A stretch of DNA of 63,828 nt, counting the filler, from Hyphochytrium catenoides (taxonomy: Eukaryota; Protista; Hyphochytriomycota), in the NCBI GenBank assembly GCA_900088475.1. It is 6 parts of 6 records of this genome, joined end to end, with 100 filler letters (N's around TTAATTAATTAA, not from the genome) between each part and the next. Parts side by side here need not be neighbours in the genome. Positions count along the whole stretch, not along the records: positions 49,752 to 62,632 come from FLMG01002126.1; 5 more parts are not named here. One strand, 5' to 3'. Both the position numbers and the translations under genes were made by a program. Below, piece by piece: positions 49,752 to 62,632 of this stretch. Numbering within the stretch: position 1 is the stretch's first letter; the number at the start of each line of letters is the position of its first letter. The notes under the pieces were generated by a model, which was given only the letters and a program-made list of their open reading frames with translations, did no database searches and was not told the origin of the DNA.

Positions 49752-49782
<31 letters not shown>

Positions 49783-50032
49783 GGAAGAGAGAAAGAAGGT
49801 TTGGGGGCAGAGGAGCGTGGCATTGAGTGCAGAGGAAATTGGGGCCATCGCGGCAGCTCAGCCTGCCATGCTCATCGTTGATGACGGGCAGGGAAGAGCT
49901 TGAGAAAGGAGGCCTCCTACAACCACAATCGCCGCAAAAGAGAGGCACGTGAGAGAGAGAAAGAGAGAAAAGAGAGAGAGAAGAGGGACCGAGACCAACC
50001 TGTGTCTCTCCTCCGCTACCACTCCGGTTCCA

Positions 50033-50235
50033 ATGTCCTTCAAAGTGGTTTATATCCCGTGTGACGGCTCTCAGCCGCTGGCGGAGTGGGACATTCCGAT
50101 CCCTGAGGGAGAGGAAGACCGCTGCCTCACTGACAGACTGAAGAGACACTTCAACCAAGACAACGCCACGCTAGACAAAGAGAAGTATAAGCACCAAGTA
50201 GTCAGCCAGGTAGGAAGAGAGAGGAAGAGAGAGAA

Positions 50236-50292
<57 letters not shown>

Positions 50293-50627
50293 GAGAGGAA
50301 GAGAGAAAGAGAGAGAGAGTAAGAAAGAAAGAAAGAAAGGGACAGAACTGTGTAAACGAGGATGAAAAAGCGAAACAGGGCCGTTCCGGAGAGGCGAAAG
50401 GGAGAGACAGGGAAGAGAGAGTGGAGAGAGGGAAACACTCGCAGAGAGAAGGAGCAGAGCAGAGATTAAGAACGAGAAAGCAGCACTGGACATTGTCACG
50501 ATCTCGCTCTCGCTCTCTTTGCTCTCTCACCCTTAGTCGAGCTCTCTCTCGTTCTTCCTTCTCTCATACCCTATCTTCTCCTATCTCGGACTCTCTCTCT
50601 CTGCGTCTCCCCATCCCTCTTTATTGA

Positions 50628-50658
<31 letters not shown>

Positions 50659-51708
50659 TGTGTCTCTCTCTCTCTCTTTTCCTCTCTGTCTCTCTCTCTT
50701 TCTCTCTCTCTCCCAGCTCCCTCAGGGCACGACCCTCCGGCCCGAGATGCTGGACATGATCCTGGCGATGGACTCTCTGGTGGACACAGTTCCTTTGCTT
50801 TTGAACAGGAGAGAGGCGAAGTTCATCGGCGTCACGCTCTACGTCGATGACAGAGGAAGTGCCAAGGGCTTGCCTTTGAATGTTAGGGCTTCTGACATCG
50901 CCAGCCAGTGCGGGAAGCCCATGCAGGTGCTCGGCGATGCGTTCATTGGGAGAATGTACGATAATGGTGAGCAGTAGGGCCTCTTCTCTCTCTCTCTTTC
51001 TCTTGCTATCTCTCTCTTTCTCCCTCTGTCTCTGTCTGTCTCCTTTTCTCTCTGCGTCTCTCTCTCCTTATGTCTCTTTTCTTTTCCCTCTTTCTCACAG
51101 ACACCGAGAGATCTTCTCCGGTTACCCGCTCTGTCTTTGTCTCGCTGGCTTCCTATAGAGCCCCCATTTCACTCTCTCTCTCTTCATGCTCTCTCTTTTT
51201 CTCTCTGTCTTTGTCGTGCGTCTCTCTCTCTCTTTTGGTTTCCTCCTTTACCTCTTGTTTCTCTCTCTGTCGCAGGAGCTCTCCTCCTCTGCCCTATATT
51301 ATTCCTGGTATTCTCTCGCTGCGCTTCTGTTCTCTTCCTTGCTTCTTTCTCCTGGCAGCAGGTCAGTTAATCCTCCTTTCTCTCTCTCTCTTTTTTCTTT
51401 CTCTCTCTCCGCCGTCTTAAGATGATGACCTGAAGCGCCTGGACTTCACCCTGAAGGACCTGGACAGCTCTGCTTCCTGGATCAAGAAGGCAAGAGAGAT
51501 GAACAAACAGCTTGCCGCCGCTGCTAGTAGAGGAGAAAGTGGTAAAGGAGAGAGAAAGATGACGGGAGAGAGAGAGAAAAGCTGCAACTATGTTGATTGT
51601 GCCGCTCCTGCCTCTTCCCGCTGCAGTCGCTGCAAGAAAGTTTTCTATTGTTCAAAAGAGCATCAAGTCGCTGACTGGAAGGCTCACAAGCGCCAGTGCG
51701 CCGCTTAA
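50033..51708 (+). CDS. zf-MYND protein (~237 aa) with a conserved N-terminal globular domain
   Basis: Exons 50033-50209, 50717-50966, 51422-51708 (phases consistent). C-terminal MYND finger CNYVDC...CSRCKKVFYCSKEHQVADWKAHKRQC. N-domain motif LYVDDRGSAKGLPLNVRASDIASQCG...VLGDAFIGR. Confidence 0.88.
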
Positions 51709-52173
51709 GATACGCGCGCGAGCGCGAGAGAGAGAGAGGAAAAAAGAAGAGAGAAAGAGAGAGAGGGGTTATGCTTGATGGCCAAAGATAAGAAGTGTTT
51801 GAACTAGGATATCAAAGAGGAAAGTACAGGATATAAAGATCTCCTGATGACGCTGCTAGGAGAGAAGTCAGTCGAGGATGAGGACACCTTTTCTTTCCAT
51901 TCTCTCTCCTTGTAAGAGTTGAATTTATTTATGTACAGGCCTGAGTCCCATCCTATCGAAGAGAGATGTCCCTCTTCATATTTCTTCTTCTCTCCCTTTT
52001 CACTTCTTCTCTACTTTCTGTCCCTCCAACTTCTTGTCTTACAGCTAGCAGAGAATCTCAATCTCTCTCTCCCTTGGATGCCTCTCTCTCTCCCTGTCTG
52101 CGATGAGTCTCTTTTTGCAGCCCGCGTCTGAACCAGTTCTGAGAGCAGAGAGAGGAAATGAAAGGGTTTAGGG

Positions 52174-55100
52174 CTATTTGTCTGGTGCGGTGAGCGGCAG
52201 ATGGAGACGCTGCAGCGCTTCTTCCCTAGTCAGCCATATCTCCTCTTTCTCTCTGTCTCTCCCATAAAGTGTGACCGCTACTCTGGTGGGAAGACGTGAG
52301 TCTATCCATTGCAGCCTAAGCTCGATCTCTCCTGCTATAGCTCTTTCTGCAGCGGAGTGCGAAGAGAGAGAGAGAGACGTAGGTAGCCTCTTCTCCCAAA
52401 ACTTTCTTCTCTTCAGCGGGAGGATAGCGTGATATACCTTCCCTCCTGCCAGCTCTGCCATGGGGATCACAACCTGCCATTGACAGCGAAACACATGGAA
52501 AGAGAGAGAAAGAGAATGAAGACAGAGAATATGGAGAGAGTGAGAGAGAGAAGCTGACATTTGCGGCAGGGCTTTACGCTAGGGTGAACTATATCCCTGC
52601 CCAGAATTATTGCAGAGATGAAGCGTAAAAGATTCTAGAGGAGAGGAAAGAAAGATAAGGGAAGGGAAGGGAGAAAGCAAGAGAAAGAGGAGAGAGACAG
52701 AGAGAAAAAGAGAGAAAGAAGAGATTGTCTGTCTGTATGAGTGAATGGCCAGGTGCCCACCACTCACCTCTCCTACATAGCTTCCAATCGCCCCTGTGGC
52801 TCCATTTCTCTCCTTTCTGCCCCCTCCCATGAGTCTATTATACACAGTGAGGGTCACTCTCTCTCTCTTGTCAGTCACCGGGACCTCGAACCTCTCTCCC
52901 CAGCGCGGCTGCGTGGTGCCCCAGCGGACAGAGGTGTGGAAGAGAGAGGAAGAACAGCGGATCTCACAATAGCGATCATTCAGGAGAGAAGAAGAGGAAG
53001 GAAGGCGCTTCGCTCCGATGACGTAGAGGCAGAGAATGTCAGGAGTAAAGACCAATCTCTCGCCTCTTCCTTCTCTTTCTCTCTCTTCTTTTACTTCTCT
53101 CTCTGGGCTAGAGTCGTGAGGGTAGTAGTCCAAAAGCTTGGAAATGGTGGCCTGGCGATAAAGTCCAGGCTCCGAAGGATCAGATATCAACACTGAAGCT
53201 CCGACCTGAGAGGGAAGAGAGAGAAAGAGACAGAGAGATAGAGTGTTTGTTACTCCCCCGCACCGAGCTTACACCCCACGACGCTGCAACATACGAGGAT
53301 GCTCCGCGAAAGACGGGAGTGGGAGGCAGAGGAAAGAGGCTTTTGAGAAAGAAAGAGAAGAAGAGTCAGAAACGCACAGAGTCCCCGAATAAAAGGGAAA
53401 GAAAGACTCAGAATGTAACGTAACACACATTGCCGAGGACAGAGAGACAGAAACTGAGTGAGGCACACAGCCAGAGAGAAAGAGAGAGAACGAGAGAAAG
53501 GTAGAGGATTTGAGAGGGGCATCAGCGGTCAGGATGGGCTTATTGACTAAGCGGGACTGTGGCTGGAGAAAGGAGAGAACTACCTCAAAGAAGTCTATCA
53601 TGGTCGGCACCCAAGGGCGGCACTTCGCCCTCGGCACCCAGACGGCGACATCCTTAGAGTTGTGATGCCAAGAGAGGAGAGAAGAGGAGGAAAGAGAAGA
53701 GGAAAGAGAGGAAGAGAAACCCAAAGGCTCTCTTCTCTCGAGGTCTTCCTTCCCTCCGTCGTCCGGCCGCGGGCTTACACTGCTTGGAGACCCAGACGGT
53801 GAGAGTGCAGGAGGGCACACTCCAGAAAAAGAGACCTGGTCAGTGGAAAGGAAAGCAACAGGTCAAAGAAAGTCTATGAGAAAGAGACAGCGGTCAAGAA
53901 AGAGACTCAGCGAGAGGATTAAGGCAGATGACTCAAAGGTGGTAAGGGTCCCGAGAAATGAAAGAACCCTTGGCAAGGCAGAGCACCTCTCAGTCGCTGC
54001 AAATAACAAGGGAAGAGGGTAGGAAAGAGAGAGAGAGAAAGAGAGAGAGAGAGTCAGGCTTGTGGAGATGGGGAAAGAGGGAAGGTCGCAGAGAGCAGTG
54101 AGAGGCATTCAAGACGAGCAGATAGAAAACAATAGTGAAGGATGCAGAAAGAACGATTCGAAGAAAGGAAAGAAAGAAAGAAAGAGAGACAGAAAAAGAG
54201 GCACCTGTAGCTTGTCGGTTCCAACCCAAAGCACCACCGCCGAGTAGAATTCAGCAGTACCTCTCCCATCCCTCTCTCCCTCTACTAATATCTCTCTCCC
54301 TATCATCTGCATGGAGCGGTGCACCGCTGCTTTCTGTCTTCGACTCCTTCTCTTGATCTCCACTCTCAGTGCGGCACTCTGCCCGTGCACACTGCTTCGG
54401 AGCAAGAAGAGAGAGAGAAGAGTGAGATGCTCCAAGAGAGAAAAGGCAATGAGTCTCTCTACATTTGTTAGGCAATCCTGCACGGGGCCGTAGGTCTCCT
54501 CGCTCACAGGACATCCCCAGAGTACGTCTAACCCTCCCGTAGTGTTAACAAAGAGTCCAACAGCCACGGCGAGAGACAGAGAAGAGAGAGAGAGAAAGAT
54601 TCTCTCCCACTGTCCAATGCCATGCGCTCTCTGAGGCATTGCCCTGCGATAATCAATGCAAATCCTCACAGCATCAAAATGCTGGGCAGCCAGATTGTGC
54701 AAGAGGGCGCAGAGGGCGCAGAAGGGCCAAACAATGGAAAACATAGTCACCACCGAGAACTGCAGTGCCATCCGAAGGAAGTCTTCAAAAGGAGAGTAAG
54801 AGGAGAATGAGGAAAGCTCTAAGATCTCTGTCGAAGATCGACAGAGATCACGGCAGTTCCACTCTTTCTTTAGCCTGAGCCGGGAAGACAGATCGCGACA
54901 AGCGCCGGCGGACGAGGCAAAGCGAGTCTGAGATGAGGAGAGAGACTCCTTCATCCGCTGGTACCAAGGGTCAGACGATTCCAAAGCTACGTGTGGGGAT
55001 AGGGAGCCCTCCTGACATAGCGACAGCGTGGAAGTACAGAGACATAGATAGTAATGTTCGTAGGGAGAGTAACCGGCGGAGAGAGAAAAATGGCGCAGGG

Positions 55101-57830
55101 AAAGACACATTTTGTTAGAAAATGAGAAGAACAAGAGGTAGAGAGGTAGTAAAGGAGGCGCGAAAAAGAGAGACAAAGACCGAGCGAGAGAGAGATATCG
55201 GAAAAGATGCAGACAGCAATTCCTTACCTCGACCGTAGAAATAATCCGTTCGTCCTCTTCTTCCAAGCTTGGGCTCCCTACCATTGCCTTGGGCAGAGCA
55301 GCGTTCTCCTCTGTCTTCTCCTGTTGATTCACATTCCTTTTCACGCGGTTACCAACATACATCTTCACCGCTCTCCCTGCGTCCACGAAGGCATCAGAGG
55401 TGGAGAGGAAGTGCTCCCTTCCTCTTCTAACTGCCTTTCTTAGCAAGACTGGAGCAAAGGTGTTGACTATGAGGTTGAGCAGCTGCGTCACAATGAGTGG
55501 AGTGACAAACGCCTTATCCATAGCCAGTCTCCCCTCTCTCCACTCCCTTGCGTACAGCACTCTTCCTCTAAAGGTGAGGAGCTCATTGCTATCCACATTC
55601 TCCTTGATCCAGTGCTGCAGCTCTGCTCCGTACGGAGTGTACACGAAGGCGAGAAGAAAGAACCAGGAGAAATAGCCTGTCCATACGAAGATGAAGGTTT
55701 TAAGCGTGTAATGGTACTCTCTCTCCTGCAGCGTCCGCCAGTTCTCCCATAGGGTCCACCGATGACTTGCCCAGTCAAAGAACGCGGTGAAAAGAATGTC
55801 AATGGCTAAGCCTAGGATGATACCTTGGACAAGGATGTACAGCCATCTCGCGCTCCCAATATGCGCCGTTGCCGTCGGAAAACAACCAAGAAAGGAGGAA
55901 CAAGGGGGAGAAACGGCGCCGAGGGCGCAGTACGCCTCACAATCTGCCCCGTACTCGGAAGAGAAAGGCAGACGACGGCGGCACGCCTCGAGGCAGGAAG
56001 ACAATGTCCCACTGCAGCGTGGATCCCCGCATTGTGGGGTCATGACTGCTATGATATACCACTGAGCGAAGAGAGCTACCAGCACTATGACGACAGAGAT
56101 GCAGATGAGAGCAAAGAGAAAAGACAGAAGACGTTTGAGAGTGCGGGCAAGAGCGCTGTACTCTTTGACCTCCACATACTCTGGCGGCTCCCCTTCTTCC
56201 GCTATGTTCACCTGTCTGATGCGATAATGCTTAAACTGAGGGTTCTCCTCTTCTGCCTCCTTGTAGAACATCACTCCGTAGCGTACTCTTAGCTTGTTCT
56301 CTAGCCTCTCCCACACTTTCAGCATGCACGGTGCCCACACCAGAGCCACCAGAAGTCCAAACAGAGAGAGACACGAGGCATACAGTCTATAGTCCAGCCA
56401 GCGGAGTGAGAGCCAAAGGAGGGTGCCAACGATCGCGATGACTTTAAGAGAATCCACATAGTGAGAGACAAAATGAAAATAGAAGGCAACTTTCAGGCCA
56501 AAGTGATTCTTAAAGCGGAGAAGGACGAGGTTCTTTCGTGCGCTATTGCCCGTTATACTGCGCCAAAGGCCCATGATCTCATTGTTGAAGTGTGGGTCAT
56601 GCAACGGGAAGATGGCATGAATCGCTGGATCTGTGTTCTCTTCGATCCCTGACAGCCCAGCACCAGGAGGAGAGACGTTGGAAGAGCGGCAGAGTAAACG
56701 GCCCAGAGCTTCGAGTCTCTCGGCAGGACTGAGGCGTCTTTTCTCTCTCTTTCTCTCTTCCATCACAGAGTCCATCTCTTCCTCACTATACAGTTCTGCC
56801 ATTCTCTCCAGGCGAAGGAGCCTGTCTTCTCTCTCTACCAGCCATTCTGGCGCATGGAGAAGGAGAACAATGTAATCCTGAGAAGTCCTTGTAGGTTGGA
56901 GTTCTGTTAGCCTCAGTTCTGCGCTTATAAGCCGACGAAGGAGGTCGAGCTGTGCCTCTTCCTCTCTCTTGTCTCTCCTAAGAATAAGGGCGAAGTCATA
57001 CTCTAAAGACGGACGGAGGTTGCACAGAGCCACCAGCTCTCTGTCTAGGACGATGCACTTGGTAAAGCGCCGCGCCACAATCCTTGTCCTTATATCTCTC
57101 TCTTGCATCAGGTCTCTCTCCATCTCTTCTCTCTTTTTATCTCCCTTCGAGGATACTATGGAGAGAGCGCCAAAGTGATCGTAGCGGGAGAGGTTGCCTC
57201 TCTCCTCCCAGTTGGCAGCTCCGTCTCCACTAGGTCCCGGTGAGTGTACAAGGCGAGAGACTTCTCCTGTTTCTATTATAAATAGCTTAGAAAGTGCCTC
57301 TTCGTGGGTGGTGATGACCTCGTCCTCTTCATAGATCAGCATCTTGCACAGCGGAGCAAGCTCCCGAAGCTCTTCGATCTGGAGGAAGAGAAGTCAGCCA
57401 TAGAGACAGATCGAGAGAGAGAGTTCAAGAGAGAGGAGCGAGGAACATGAGAAAGAGACACAGTGAGTAGGTGAGTTAGAGTAAGAGAGAGAGATAATAA
57501 GATCCGTTAGAGCATGGGAAGGCTGCAAGTACACAGCCGAGAGAACAGTGGCAAGAAAGCGGGGAGGGGAGTCGACGCAGCCCTACATAGCAAAAAAAAG
57601 AGAAAGGCACCTTCGGCGTCATACTAATCTGTCTCTCTGACCTGAAGCTGCCTTAGTAGCGGCACGTCCTGCAGGAAAGAGACACTGATCTCTGTGTTCC
57701 TCCTGGTGGCCGCATCAATCTTAGAAAAGAACAAGGGGCTGCGGCGCCGCCCATGGCTGGAAATGACGTGAGGATCCTCCTTAGGGCCTTGGATGGCTGG
57801 AGGCGCCCTCTTACGCAGTCGAGGAAGCAT
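52174..57830 (-). CDS. Anoctamin/TMEM16-family protein (~1378 aa) with N-terminal cyclic-nucleotide-binding(-homology) domain and C-terminal Tudor-like and C2 domains
   Basis: All phase-0 exons: 57830-57642 (start uncertain), 57378-55228, 55011-54205, 53835-53584, 53205-52768, 52473-52174. CNBD: FLQDVPLLRQLQ|IEELRELAPLC...LFIIETGEV...DHFGALS...IVARRFTKCIVLDRE. TMEM16: IFPLHD, KNHFGLKVAFYFHFVSHY, WTLWENWRT...YTLKTFIF, PFEDFLRMALQFSVVTMFSIVWP, DAVRICIDYRR..PQRAHGIGQW, LEHL. C2: LCLYVIGAKRL...DRYCEIR...TTQPRWGERFEV...GEIELRLQW. Confidence 0.9.
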
Positions 57831-59251
57831 GGCGTCGCCGTCCTCCAAAGACACCTGTCTCGCCCTTTCACACTACAGCTAATGCAACCATCACTCTTCT
57901 TCACGAGGAGGAGGCAATCATTAAAGAGATCATCTAGTTCCTCTTCTCTCCCTTGTGGTCCTCCTATTCGTCGGAGCTTGAAAGCCAGGTTGTCAGAGCT
58001 GTGGCTGGGGAAGAAGCAGCTTGGCAGCAACGCCTTCTTCCCACAGCAGCAGGTCGTCGATGATGGAGACGAAGCTTCATAATAAACGCGATGGCGTCTC
58101 TTTCTTCGTCTGATTCTGAACAGCGCAGTGTCTCTCTATCCATGCAACTTTACACAGCGAATGATTCATAGATTTCTAGCCCGTTGTTATATTACTGGTT
58201 ATTGGACCATGTCTTCGACAGTCTGGGACATTGAAATATTGAAGTTTGCGGGCGGGCGTTAGAGTCTTCCCCCAGGACTTGTCATTTTGATGACTGATGT
58301 GTCGATGATGAGAGAAGAAAGGAGGAGGAGGAGGATGTGAAGCAGCAGCAGCGGACGGAGACTGCTCCTGAGTATTATTATATATTGTGAAGCCTTTCTT
58401 CTTCGCTCGTTGTTGTTGTCGTGGTGGTGATCGCAGCAGCAACATGCCTTGCTTCTTCTTCTTTGATGCTGCTCCTGCGGTGCCCTCATCGAGAGGAGGA
58501 CTATTGGTGATCAGCAGTTCTGCTTGTGTGATCGATGAGGGAGGACAACATCGACCAGCAACGTAATAAAATCTACTCCGTAAATTATCTTCTAGTGGTA
58601 GTGAACTCTTCATGATCAGTCAGTCCGCCCTATCAATATTGTTTGCTTCCCTCTTGCTTGCCTGTCAGGCGGAGAGAGGCCTTTGCTTGGAAGCAGTTGT
58701 TATCACCCTGGCACTATTGTCATCAAGATACAATAATCAATCTTTAGCGAAAAAGTGTTCACCGGGCAGCTACTATTATCATGTACGGCACTACTAGACT
58801 AGTGGTAGTGTGGTTGAAGAAGAGTTCGCTGCTGGCATAGACGAAGCTGCTCTCCCTCTTAGTTAGTAATAACCACCAACAGTCACACTAGGGTTGTTGT
58901 CTAATCTTTATAGCGCAACCATAAGGCATGTCTTGCCTCCTCCTCCGCTAGCGCAGCACGCTGTAAGACTAAATAACAAACACCCCAGACTCGCATTTAG
59001 AAGTTTTTTCTTTCTGGTCACTAAAGAACATGCCTCATCGCAAGAAAGCCAAATATATTTAAACCTTCATTCTTCTTTCTGCCCCGATTTTTGAATACTT
59101 TTGCGTATCCTCTAAGGAGCTAGTTCTCTTCTCGTCTATGTCAAGCAACAAGACACCCCGCCTCTTTTCAGACGGGATCTCAGAAACAGCAACCACTGCT
59201 CAGCCATCTACTACCTAGACTTTACCTGTCATGCCAAGCAGCGACGAGCTA

Positions 59252-59671
59252 CTACTTAGGCAAGAGGGGATCCCGATGCGCCTCTGGTGGATCCAGATGG
59301 ACTCCGAAAGGCGCAAGAGCGAGCCGAGCGAGCTTTAGATGCGCCCAAGCAAAGGGAATTCCGATAATGGTCACAAACATTGAGAGGGACCAGAAGAGAT
59401 GGTTTATCGCTAGCACGATGCCCAATGGTAGCCAGAGGATGTTTAGACACAGAGATAGTAGGCCACTGGATCCCACAGTAGGGGCGTTATCCACGTTTAG
59501 AGAGAAAGGGAGAAGGGAGAGCCAGGCAATTTTGAAACATTGAAATCCAAAGGGAATGCCAACAATGGTGAGACAGAGCACCAGGCCCACGGCAGCCCAA
59601 AGAAGGAAGGACTCAATGCCTCCAAGCAAGAGCCAGAGTACGGTCAACAATAGCTCGAGAAGTTGATTCAT
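59252..59671 (-). CDS. yccF: Stand-alone YccF-family (inner membrane component) protein, 139 aa, intronless
   Basis: Two YccF half-repeats: LWLLLGG...LCLTIVGIPFGFQCFKIAWLSLLPF and LNILWLPLG...TIIGIPFAWAHLKLARLALAPFG. Confidence 0.88.
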   Translation of the reverse strand: MNQLLELLLTVLWLLLGGIESFLLWAAVGLVLCLTIVGIPFGFQCFKIAWLSLLPFSLNVDNAPTVGSSGLLSLCLNILWLPLGIVLAINHLFWSLSMFVTIIGIPFAWAHLKLARLALAPFGVHLDPPEAHRDPLLPK

Positions 59672-60557
59672 GCTTGCGCGGAATGGATGTGGAGGAGGAG
59701 GAAGCCTTTTCTGCCGGTAGAGACACGATGATGATGTGCCGCTAGTGCCTTTCGTTTCTGGTGTAAGGTCACAATATTTGAGAAAGCTTGTAAGGATCGG
59801 CAACAGGCCGCCCGGCCAGACTGGAAGCCTAGACTCTGACTGGCAAGTCTATGTTGTCTCTTTTGTTGCTGACACTTTCTTGCAATAAATTAATTATAAA
59901 GCCTGGCGTGAGCCTTCGCAGAGCAAGTTGATTGGATAGTACGTATTGACTACGAGCATAGACGACCAAAGAGCCCGAAGTCTGGCGAAGTCGGTTCAAC
60001 TGGACTGGCAGCAGCTGCTGCAGTGAATGACCGGAGATAAAGAAATGACTGAGAAATCGCACGATGCATAGCGGAGCCTCTATTCCAACAAGGCAGAGCA
60101 CAGACCACCAGCAGCGGGCTGCGGCGCGGCAGGACATACAGGCCGCTGCCGCTCAAGAACATCGATGAAGGAGCTTGGAAATGCAACTTCGGAACAGAAA
60201 AGACAATGGCAGAAGCTTCTGATCAGTGTGGATCCGCGGTAGATAAAGATACGCAAAAATAGATAGCCGCAGTCGGTAGACAGAGAGCCACCAAACTGTT
60301 GTGATGACGCCAGACAGAGCCTAAAGGTTTGCACCGTTTAGCGTGACAGAGTCAAGTATGAAAGGAGAGACAGAGTACGGAGAGATAGGTAGTACGTCAA
60401 GACAGAGCGTTGTAGAAGAGAGACAGAGCGACGGGACAGAACATGTTAGGGGAACAGCCATAAAGTTATGAGGTCTGTCTGAAACGGTTATTGTTCCCCA
60501 TCCAAAGGGGGGCCAAGCGATGCGGAGTGTACATACACTGGACAACAACAACTACAA

Positions 60558-60804
60558 GTGGTGCGTACCTTCGGCTACCTAGGTATCCATATGCCCCATC
60601 CCCGTGTTAACCTTAAACCACGGTACTCACCACCTATGAGACCAAGGATCCTAAGACGATAAAGGGTCAATCCCACACTTTCCCCAGGATCTTATGTGTG
60701 GGGACCCAGAATTCCCCCTGGTCCTCAACACAAAAAAGTAGGTTTGGTACTCAGGAGCCATATCTCTCGATGAGGGTTGCCTATGTCCTGAGGGAGCTAA
60801 ACCT
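60558..60804 (+). other. Candidate structured RNA/DNA element (three consecutive long stem-loops)
   Basis: Paired segments: 60558-60569/60622-60633 (11 of 12), 60637-60644/60719-60727, 60664-60678/60696-60707, 60740-60748/60796-60804, 60750-60756/60786-60792. Confidence 0.4.
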
Positions 60805-61094
60805 CTATCTTATTGTGCCGAATGCCTCCTCTAGCTTGTCCCTTAGTCAGCTCTGTCTCGTAGGTTGAAGTTGGTGGGAAATAAGTTCAGAAGGGCCAGC
60901 AGGAGGGCGGGTGGGCGGTACATACAGGCCAGGGCGGGCATCTCTGTAGGAAAGGAGAGATTCTCTCTTCACATCTCTTCCTCTCTTTCTCTTTTCTCTT
61001 CCTTCTGTCGTCCTCTCCTCCTTTTCCTTCTCTCACTCTTTGTTCCTTGTTTCCATCTCTTTCTCTCCATCCTCTCTCTCTCTCCATCCTCTCT

Positions 61095-61270
61095 CTCTTT
61101 CCTTTCCCTTTCCCTCCCTCTTTCTTGTCATTCCTCTAACTGTTTCTGTCATCTCTCTCTCTCTTTCTCTCCCTCTCGCTCTTTCCTTTCCCTCTCCCTC
61201 CCTCTTTCTTGTCATTCCTCTAACTGTTTCTGTCATCTCTCTCTCTCTTTCTCTCCCTCTCGCTCTTTCT
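61095..61270. repeat. 84-bp tandem duplication (2 copies) in CT-rich sequence
   Basis: CTTGTCATTCCTCTAACTGTTTCTGTCATC at 61124 and 61208. Confidence 0.85.
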
Positions 61271-62111
61271 CTTCCGCCTCTCTTTCTTCCCTCCAGGCCT
61301 CTCTCCCTTTCTCTCTCTCTCTCTCCCTCTTTCTCTCTCATTCTATCTCTTTCTCTATCTTTCTCTCTTTCTCTCTCTTTCTCTCTCCTTTTTCCTCTCT
61401 CACCACTAAGGCCAGGAATCTCCAACATGTTCCTACCTTTGGAAGATGGTTCTTTCCTCCTGCGCCTGCATCTTGGAACCACCATCGCCTGGATTCTTTG
61501 GTCTCTCTCCCTCGTCAGGTCCCTGCGCACGTGTGGCTGCTGCGGCATCTGCTCGAACCTCATGGAACATCACGCTTCCCATTGGCCCGATGGACGTCAT
61601 CTCCTTCGCTCAGGGACGCGTTGCGGCTCCCAATGTATTTTCCTTTCCATCTACACGGCTGGCCTCTGTCTACCATCATCATCGGTCGTCTTATCGTCAG
61701 CAGCTGCCCGCCCACAGACCTTCACTTTATCCGCTGCCGCCAGCCATGCTTCTCTCTTCTCGGAGCGTCCAATGCTGGAGCTTTGGGTTCAGTGAGAGCA
61801 CCGGAGGCAGTCGACAGAACAAATCATGACGAGGCCAAAATCTTTCATTAGCAAGTTCTGTCTCCCCTCTTTCTCTCTCTCTCTCTCTCTCTAGCTCTCT
61901 CTCTCTTTCAATGTATCTCCCTTTTCTCTCTGTCTCTCTCTCTCTGTCTCCACGTGGCTGTCCGACATCATCGCTCTCCGGTCTCGGGACGCTTTGCATT
62001 TCTCACTCTCTTCTCATTATAAATAGTTCTAGATTGACGTTCCACCACCTTTTCCTACCAGCACCCAACCGGCTCGCCGACCACGCTCGTTTTTTATTTC
62101 CTTTTATAAAA

Positions 62112-62155
<44 letters not shown>

Positions 62156-62260
62156 TTCTTTCTCTTTGTCTCTCTCTAGTCTCACTACTTTTTATCCTTC
62201 GCCGTCAACACACCATCCTCTCTCCTCTCTCTCTGTCTCTCACTCTCTCTCTCTCTCTCA

Positions 62261-62296
<36 letters not shown>

Positions 62297-62632
62297 GGAC
62301 TTTTTGGGCGACCTGCTGGCTGTGCATGAGAGTCTCTCACCAACGGTCAAGTATCTCCTCTGTTGATTGTTCTCATCTTCTTGTTCCTATGAAGAAAGTC
62401 ACAAAGAAGTAGGAGACGAAGCTCCTTGCGCTCAAGTCAGAGCCGCGCTATCCGCTCACTTATCTACGAGAGAGAGAGAGAGAAAAAAACTCTTTCTGAG
62501 CTCTGACCACTGGACACTGAATAAAACACACATAATAAACCGACAGAGAAAAGGCTTTCTCTCTCCTCTCATCTCGGCCTCGTCTCTTCTTTCTCTCTCT
62601 CTCTCTCTCTCTTGTCTTCTGCACCTCATTTT

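Follow-up and report, generated by a model that had tools for sequence, protein, structure and literature searches.

TMEM16 (anoctamin) proteins are usually defined by their activation by Ca2+. The fungal nhTMEM16 and afTMEM16 and human TMEM16K, for example, are Ca2+-stimulated and carry the full N/E/D/E/E/D site (N448, E452, D503, E506, E535 and D539 in nhTMEM16). The sole characterised exception that we found in the literature searched is yeast IST2, a TMEM16 protein that lacks the conserved site and functions as a scramblase with constitutive activity (PMC12618243, a 2025 paper on IST2 and OSH6). Lys443 of IST2, which occupies the position of nhTMEM16 E506, forms a bifurcated salt bridge linking helices alpha6 and alpha8 and in this way "replaces Ca2+" (PMC12618243). 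A second group likewise found Ist2 scrambling to be Ca2+-insensitive, with Ca2+ rapidly leaving the site in molecular dynamics (MD) simulations (bioRxiv 10.1101/2025.02.13.638165). Here we describe a gene for a TMEM16 protein of the hyphochytrid Hyphochytrium catenoides (GenBank assembly GCA_900088475.1) in which three of the five acidic Ca2+ ligands are replaced, one of them by a basic residue at the same E506 position. The gene has several exons and occupies approximately 57854-52174 on the minus strand of the window (the whole stretch of DNA analysed, 63,828 nucleotides composed of six joined parts of this genome), within the part that comes from FLMG01002126.1 (49752-62632). Its product combines a divergent cyclic nucleotide-binding-like (CNB-like) domain with a TMEM16 core and, at the C-terminus, a C2 domain.

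A TMEM16 protein without the Ca2+ site is thus already known in the form of IST2, and orthologues of the H. catenoides protein are already present in databases as hypothetical proteins. On the other hand, the literature searched yielded no description of the subfamily, of its CNB-like/C2 fusions or of the combination of site residues reported below, and a 2018 survey of the superfamily makes no mention of CNB-like/C2 TMEM16 fusions.

The TMEM16 core and its Ca2+-site residues

A 1077-codon open stretch (54109-57342, minus strand) matches the Pfam Anoctamin profile (PF04547) with an E-value of 3e-71 and 241 bits, against a cut-off of 28 bits, and the match covers the whole domain (profile positions 2-460 of 460). 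In a phmmer comparison with all PDB sequences, the best match was nhTMEM16 (E 9e-28), and afTMEM16, TMEM16K, TMEM16F and TMEM16A came next. Of the solved proteins, the first three (E 9e-28 to 6e-21) thus come nearest in sequence; Ist2 was not among the PDB matches at E<=0.001. The AlphaFold2 (AF2) model of the core, computed from a 56-row alignment, displays the ten-helix TMEM16 fold, with a mean predicted local distance difference test score (pLDDT) of 80.9 (above 90 in the helices) and a predicted template modelling score (pTM) of 0.78. A Foldseek search with this model again placed nhTMEM16, afTMEM16 and TMEM16K on top (E 1e-13 to 6e-17, probability 1.00, TM-score by target 0.60-0.71), then TMEM16F and TMEM16A, with yeast Ist2 (9hhe) at rank 50 and 12% identity. 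With nhTMEM16, afTMEM16 and TMEM16K the protein shares an ungapped TM7-TM8 block (TM, transmembrane helix), the motif "RRP.P.R..IG.W" and the cytosolic N-domain; unlike it, these three have no CNB-like or C2 domain, no Cys-rich loop and no long alpha6-alpha7 insertion. Taken together with the comparisons given below, these matches assign the gene product to a stramenopile (oomycete-type) subfamily of TMEM16/anoctamin proteins, as an intact member with the architecture CNB-like, TMEM16 core and C2.

The original prediction, made by manual alignment to TMEM16A/K motifs, had read the acidic ligands of this core as a Glu-to-Asn change in TM6, a Glu-to-Arg change at the second Glu of the TM7 motif (DFLRM) and a Glu-to-Ala change with the Asp kept in TM8 (LHNLAAQHFDA). 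This reading proved correct in both HMMER and MAFFT alignments, in which E452 of nhTMEM16 corresponds to N627, E506 to R857, E535 to A886 and D539 to D890. The TM7-TM8 block is free of gaps against nhTMEM16 in the phmmer/HMMER alignment (numbered from chain residue 492), and a separate 56-sequence MAFFT alignment reproduced all eight columns, which read NNDRHNAD for the window protein versus the canonical NEDENNED. The ligand set of a Ca2+-activated TMEM16 is therefore incomplete, as had been claimed, with three of five acidic ligands lost, the equivalents of D503 and D539 and the Asn ligands kept, and the neighbouring motifs preserved. All three motifs lie at the predicted place, on the minus strand. 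No acidic residue is found in TM6, and the only additional one nearby is E853, which adjoins D854. Since the flanks are conserved and the TM7-TM8 alignment has no gap, no alternative register restores the ligands; nor did the multiple alignment bring any other acidic residue into the site.

Two further features of the core were observed. The alpha6 helix is predicted by AF2 as a single helix of 72 residues reaching far into the cytosol (55306-55521, minus strand, pLDDT 80-90), and directly after it stands an insertion of ~200 residues, which orthologues have as well; IST2 likewise carries an extra helix after alpha6 (PMC12618243). Within the core, a Cys-rich loop with approximately 9-10 Cys residues (counted by eye) is inserted at 55861-56043 (minus strand); none of the aligned fungal and animal relatives showed anything similar.

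Conservation of the site and basic residues in other clades

The nearest kin of the window protein are stramenopile sequences. A word-index search retrieved proteins of Achlya hypogyna, Aphanomyces astaci, Globisporangium ultimum and Saprolegnia parasitica at 37-40% identity, and an exhaustive search of representatives (2879 matches, 39 of them below 1e-30) added Pythium insidiosum and Globisporangium splendens. Overall, the oomycete orthologues are 37-43% identical to the window protein by BLASTP and phmmer, and up to 46% over trimmed columns. No relative above 46% identity was found, and the window protein itself does not occur in the library clustered at 50%. In databases the orthologues are annotated as hypothetical proteins, or else as "transmembrane", "C2 domain-containing" or "cyclic nucleotide-binding domain-containing" ones. 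They share with the window protein the CNB-like/TMEM16/C2 architecture, the Cys-rich loop and a C-terminal motif, and differ from it in having His at the E506 position (Arg in P0007 only) and in keeping more of the Asp residues of C2.

Site residues were tabulated over all 155 retrieved proteins, and frequencies were taken from the nearest TMEM16 representatives in which TM7-8 is complete, 131 in number. E or D stands at the E506 position in 108 of these 131, E at the E535 position in 107 and D at the D539 position in 121. The triple pattern of Asn in TM6, Asp..[Arg or His] in TM7 and Asn..Ala...Asp in TM8 occurs, among the 155 proteins tabulated, solely in the window protein and in P0001, P0002, P0003, P0007, P0020 and P0058. 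As most of the 131 representatives keep E or D at E506 and E at E535, and the triple pattern is confined to the window protein and its orthologues, more than chance has to be assumed. The full degenerate site was read in P0001 (Achlya hypogyna), P0002 (Aphanomyces astaci) and P0058 (Globisporangium). P0004 (Globisporangium) and P0008 (Pythium insidiosum) show the TM6 part of the pattern only, and P0005 (Saprolegnia) is truncated before TM6.

Maximum-likelihood analysis of 62 cores joins the window protein in one clade with P0001, P0002, P0003 and P0007 (99% by the Shimodaira-Hasegawa-like approximate likelihood ratio test, SH-aLRT), inside which it branches outside the other four (100%). This suggests that the window lineage stands outside the sampled Saprolegniales-type and Pythium-type sequences (on a gene tree, which is not a species tree). 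The N-terminal region of P0007 is 76% identical to that of Achlya. As the N / R-or-H / A site is found clade-wide, the rebuilt site is ancestral to the clade, and its maintenance at ~40% overall identity speaks for selection and not for erosion or decay. The same data bear on the suspicion that the gene is a pseudogene, or that the substitutions are artefacts of translation or of the gene model. An in-frame, intron-like stretch is indeed read through in the raw open reading frame (ORF), and the gene model is built on homology; all exons are, however, open, the splice sites are canonical, and the C-terminal motif and stop are conserved. The exons that contain the site residues are long, the flanks of these residues are conserved, and the same pattern recurs in seven independently assembled orthologues. 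On the strength of this conservation we reject the pseudogene reading, and give the suspicion as a whole hardly any weight.

Basic residues at the former ligand positions are also found in other protist clades, namely Lys at E506 in P0023 and P0127 and Arg in P0026 and P0009, which would, as in the window protein, put a cation into the former Ca2+ pocket. The clades with a basic residue at E506 or E535 are separate from the window clade on the tree, have kept different partner residues and have no detected CNB/C2 fusion. A basic residue at E506 has at least three origins on the 62-row tree (the window clade, P0009 and P0023), and Lys or His at E535 at least two. One of the latter is a separate oomycete paralogue clade (P0029, P0037, P0038, P0063 and P0126, including Pythium brassicae and Aphanomyces astaci), in which E535 is replaced by Lys, together with Ile or His at N531 and Ala, Gly, Gln or Asn at the TM6 Glu; judged by its residues, this clade represents a second, different way to place a cation in the former pocket. 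P0009 (L002 111-3068, from Logan SRR9993446) is a 985-residue anoctamin near the window clade, with Asp in TM6, DYLRM in TM7, His for E535 and Cys for D539, and thus with a site that, as aligned, is more reduced than that of the window protein; neither a CNB-like nor a C2 domain could be detected in P0009. Finally, the anoctamin-domain proteins P0048 and P0165 (Saprolegnia parasitica and S. diclina, ~1900 aa) read "DHHNAH" at the TM7-8 positions and contain more than one TM7-8-like match.

Proposed activity, accessory domains and alternatives

R857 can be equated with Lys443 of IST2 via nhTMEM16 E506, following the correspondence given in PMC12618243. Both proteins have a TMEM16 fold, a degenerate alpha6-8 site with a basic residue at the E506 position, a retained alpha8 Asp (D476 in IST2 and D890 here, the equivalent of D539), additional structure behind alpha6 and, at the C-terminus, an extension with which another membrane could be reached. 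On the other hand, the tail of IST2 is disordered, polybasic and binds OSH6, whereas the window protein has folded modules and a C2 domain, along with an N-terminal CNB-like domain. Common descent with Saccharomycetaceae IST2 is not borne out by the remote Foldseek rank, the low identity and the stramenopile affinity of the nearest kin. With IST2 being a distant relative, the resemblance at the E506 position is convergent.

The data above show the substitutions, their conservation, the fold and the domain layout; what these mean for function is deduced from them. The reading that we consider most probable, if by no means secure, is that of a Ca2+-site-independent TMEM16, probably a scramblase, in which a cationic side chain neutralises two Asp residues, the activity is constitutive or governed by the added modules, and C2 serves membrane attachment. 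The two-Ca2+ site between alpha6, alpha7 and alpha8 would have been rebuilt as a charge-balanced polar cluster, made up of D854 and D890 together with Asn, Arg (or His) and Ala. Without the acidic cluster, the two Ca2+ ions would no longer be needed and would probably not be bound at the site. At the E506 position, the basic residue would stand in for the cation, pairing with D890 and D854 and hydrogen-bonding to the alpha6 Asn residues, in a manner similar to Lys443 of IST2; the candidate partners for such a salt bridge are the retained D890 of alpha8 and, with the alpha6 Glu replaced by N627, D854 on alpha7. The core, which has the fungal scramblases and TMEM16K as its nearest characterised relatives, would then most likely move lipids, perhaps also ions, without depending on Ca2+ at this site. 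This activity may be constitutive, or controlled via the CNB-like domain, the ~200-residue alpha6-alpha7 insertion and C2; with the CNB-like and C2 domains present, regulation by something else is as open as constitutive activity.

Several observations weigh against this reading. IST2 keeps the alpha6 Glu as the partner of its lysine, whereas the window protein has Asn (N627) there, and among the orthologues Arg at the E506 position is limited to the window protein and P0007, with His in five of the seven closest relatives. The original prediction of the Arg as a built-in cation thus gains a precedent from a solved structure in IST2 K443, while the conservation expected of the Arg as such did not materialise and the alpha6 partner is a different one. 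The remaining set of D/D/N/N/N plus E853 could still hold one ion. Doubt also attaches to the N-terminal module, as the window protein scores 15.9 bits (E 0.013) against the Pfam cNMP_binding profile (PF00027) and its orthologues 15.7-19.5 bits, all below the cut-off of 27.5 bits, and as its phosphate-binding cassette reads FGA for FGE (57154-57180) and is followed by an insertion of ~18 residues before "IRTRIVA" (57073-57096). Moreover, the gene model is based on homology and splice scans.

Of the other readings, the one closest to the site itself would have D854, D890, N623, N627, N883 and perhaps E853 bind a single ion, or Ca2+ at lower affinity, with the Arg or His swinging away. The strict conservation of two acidic and three Asn ligands, with E853 adjoining D854, speaks in its favor; such an ion must, however, sit beside the cationic Arg in the pocket, and from the similarly reduced site of IST2 Ca2+ left fast in MD, with activity unaffected (bioRxiv 10.1101/2025.02.13.638165; PMC12618243), which makes residual binding very unlikely in our view. 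Loss of transport altogether, with the core merely anchoring or tethering the CNB-like and C2 modules to a membrane, would find a parallel in tethers between the endoplasmic reticulum and the plasma membrane, which a C-terminal membrane-binding module on a TMEM16 body recalls. This we hold to be highly improbable, as the transmembrane core including TM3-TM8 is highly conserved (pLDDT >90; 38-46% identity), and as IST2, long believed to be inactive, turned out to be an active scramblase (PMC12618243).

The accessory domains are of importance for a further alternative, in which the protein is not constitutive and is gated by another signal (a cyclic nucleotide or different ligand of the CNB-like domain, lipid or Ca2+ at C2, phosphorylation of the alpha6-alpha7 insertion, or protonation of the His or Arg). 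We regard this alternative as possible, though unlikely. It is in line with the conservation of the CNB-like and C2 domains together with the core across orthologues, with the position of the 200-residue insertion directly behind the gating helix alpha6 (a continuous helix of 72 residues in the AF2 model) and with His being the commoner residue at the E506 position. For the N-terminal domain, a subfamily profile of the CNB-like region (A1) matched PKG (8e-12), PKA-RII (5e-8) and PKG1 (positions 9-122, 3.5e-6), and the window fragment alone matched the CNB domain of PKA RII-alpha (phmmer, E 0.0016). By these matches the domain is homologous to solved CNB domains, hence the term "CNB-like"; its regulatory role is speculative because of the sub-threshold Pfam score and the disrupted cassette. 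In fact, both the missing cassette Glu (FGA) and the canonical cassette Arg, whose column is not conserved among orthologues, argue against gating through this domain.

The C2 domain is recognised by Pfam (PF00168) with an E-value of 7.8e-9 and 36.1 bits, against a cut-off of 22 bits (45-79 bits in the orthologues), and the Achlya C2 matches the C2 domains of ferlins and synaptotagmins. In the window protein, its loops read "NDRY" and "VYNRL", with approximately one of five Ca2+-ligand Asp residues, compared to "LDPY" and "VYNHD" in Achlya (loops assigned by eye). As judged from these residues, a role of C2 in attaching or tethering the protein to membranes is more likely than one in sensing Ca2+. 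The idea that C2 has taken over Ca2+ sensing was accordingly downgraded, the window C2 being without most of the ligand Asp residues, and the same loss speaks against gating by Ca2+ at C2. Nor did we find, in the literature searched, an experimental precedent for a ligand other than Ca2+ gating a TMEM16 protein. A bolder version, in which gating has moved from Ca2+ to a CNB-like ligand or to His/Arg protonation in the former pocket, with C2 placing the protein at a membrane contact site of oomycete-type cells, appears distinctly unlikely; if true, no TMEM16 scramblase or channel before it would have been known to respond to a switch different from Ca2+.

Gene model, surroundings and implications

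The original prediction had taken a single ORF as the gene, a view that has to be revised: the raw ORF is one part of a multi-exon gene, with CNB-like and C2 pieces on the same strand (Table 1). The large exon is supported by a tblastn match of Achlya P0001 residues 120-809 to 57372-55294 (E 1e-151), and the exon that follows by residues 939-1163 to 54882-54202 (E 2e-43). The peptide joined across the 263-nt intron matches the segment "KKFLAGVEEF..L.D.EL..LA" of the orthologues, and the peptide of the upstream exon, "RSPLFFSKIDAAT", has a weak match to the Saprolegnia N-terminus. For the start of the gene upstream of 57854, tblastn with the N-termini of seven relatives returned weak and inconsistent matches, and splicing out a 58-nt intron considered as a candidate would disrupt the reading frame. 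Downstream of the core, the C-terminal exons encode two short beta-rich segments and C2; the Ser/Leu-rich part of exon 53584-53835 may hide a further small intron.

The stretch 55012-55227 is in frame, free of stops, read through in the raw ORF, and could be retained with the protein left intact. Homology scoring gave the unspliced version a slightly higher score, in a TM6-TM7 loop too poorly conserved for such a score to decide. We consider it a probable intron on splice signals, composition and low pLDDT; in either case it sits in the cytosolic TM6-TM7 loop, clear of the Ca2+ site. The four inferred downstream introns (55012-55227, 53836-54204, 53206-53583 and 52474-52767, of 216, 369, 378 and 294 nt) all have lengths divisible by three, and the coding sequence from 57378 to 52174 thus runs in one reading frame.

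Table 1. Features of the H. catenoides TMEM16 gene, in the order of transcription (positions along the window)
Feature	Position	Strand	Basis and remarks
Upstream exon, start of CNB-like domain ("...VSFLQDVPLLRQLQ")	57642-57854	-	ends CAG|GT, donor GT 57641-57640; joins 57378 in phase 0
Intron, 263 nt, GT...AG, CT-rich	57379-57641	-	read from sequence
Large exon: CNB-like domain, cytosolic N-domain, TM1-TM6, start of TM6-TM7 insertion	55228-57378	-	tblastn, Pfam; AF2 pLDDT mostly >90
Rest of CNB-like domain	56958-57378	-	Pfam cNMP_binding E 0.013; phmmer to PKA RII-alpha
Cys-rich extracellular loop "MTPQCGDPRC...GCFPT"	55861-56043	-	AF2 pLDDT 73-86; kept in oomycete orthologues
TM6 motif QLLNLIVNTFAP	55450-55485	-	N623 (55474-55476) = nhTMEM16 N448, kept; N627 (55462-55464) = E452, Glu lost
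Probable intron, 216 nt, GAG|GTAAGG ... TGTCAG|GAG	55012-55227	-	splice scan; CT-rich like the other introns; pLDDT of translation 31-57
Exon: end of TM6-TM7 insertion, TM7-TM10, start of C-terminal extension	54205-55011	-	donor CAG|GT at 54205/54204
TM7 motif DFLRM	54769-54783	-	D854 (54781-54783) = D503, kept; R857 (54772-54774) = E506, Glu to Arg
TM8 motif LHNLAAQHFDA, residues H882 and N883	54670-54702	-	H882 = N531; N883 = N532, invariant
TM8 motif LHNLAAQHFDA, residues A886 and D890	54670-54702	-	A886 (54685-54687) = E535, Glu lost; D890 (54673-54675) = D539, kept
C-terminal extension exon ("VSFSGV...KDVAVWVPRAKCRPWVPTMIDFFE")	53584-53835	-	homology-guided splice scan; introns 53836-54204 and 53206-53583
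Exon: second small beta-rich segment and most of C2 (52768-53055)	52768-53205	-	Pfam C2; BLASTP to Achlya C2
Last exon: end of C2 and conserved C-terminal motif "ELRLQWIDSRLPTRVAV"	52174-52473	-	stop 52174-52176; tblastn with P0001, P0003 and P0004 C-termini; intron 52474-52767

The surroundings on the FLMG01002126.1 part are rich in (GA)n/(CT)n microsatellites, which are dense in intergenic and intronic DNA throughout 49752-62632 (e.g. 50216-50319, 50628-50712, 61056-61387 and 62117-62295). An 84-bp tandem repeat of ~2.5 copies occupies 61060-61337. These microsatellites and repeats yield long spurious ORFs of the "SLSLSL" and "ERERER" type on both strands. The YccF domain is best known from bacteria, and two copies of this inner-membrane domain (PF03733, E 2.1e-28) are encoded by an ORF at 59252-59803 (minus strand), beside the TMEM16 gene on a eukaryote-like contig. 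Upstream, a likely multi-exon gene at 49949-51708 (plus strand) carries a DUF3846-like segment, which is below threshold (E 0.004), and, at the C-terminus, a zinc finger of the MYND type (PF01753, E 4.7e-12).

For the TMEM16 family, these comparisons would mean that the very helix position of the IST2 lysine acquired a cationic residue independently in a eukaryotic supergroup other than that of yeast, and several more times among protists, so that what looked like a yeast curiosity becomes a recurrent evolutionary route. The natural Arg and His variants may be useful for probing the control that the alpha6-alpha8 interface exerts over the lipid groove, and the fusion with CNB-like and C2 domains suggests a new mode of regulating or positioning a scramblase. 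The carriers include important animal pathogens (Aphanomyces, Saprolegnia and Pythium insidiosum), whose membrane biology is of practical interest.

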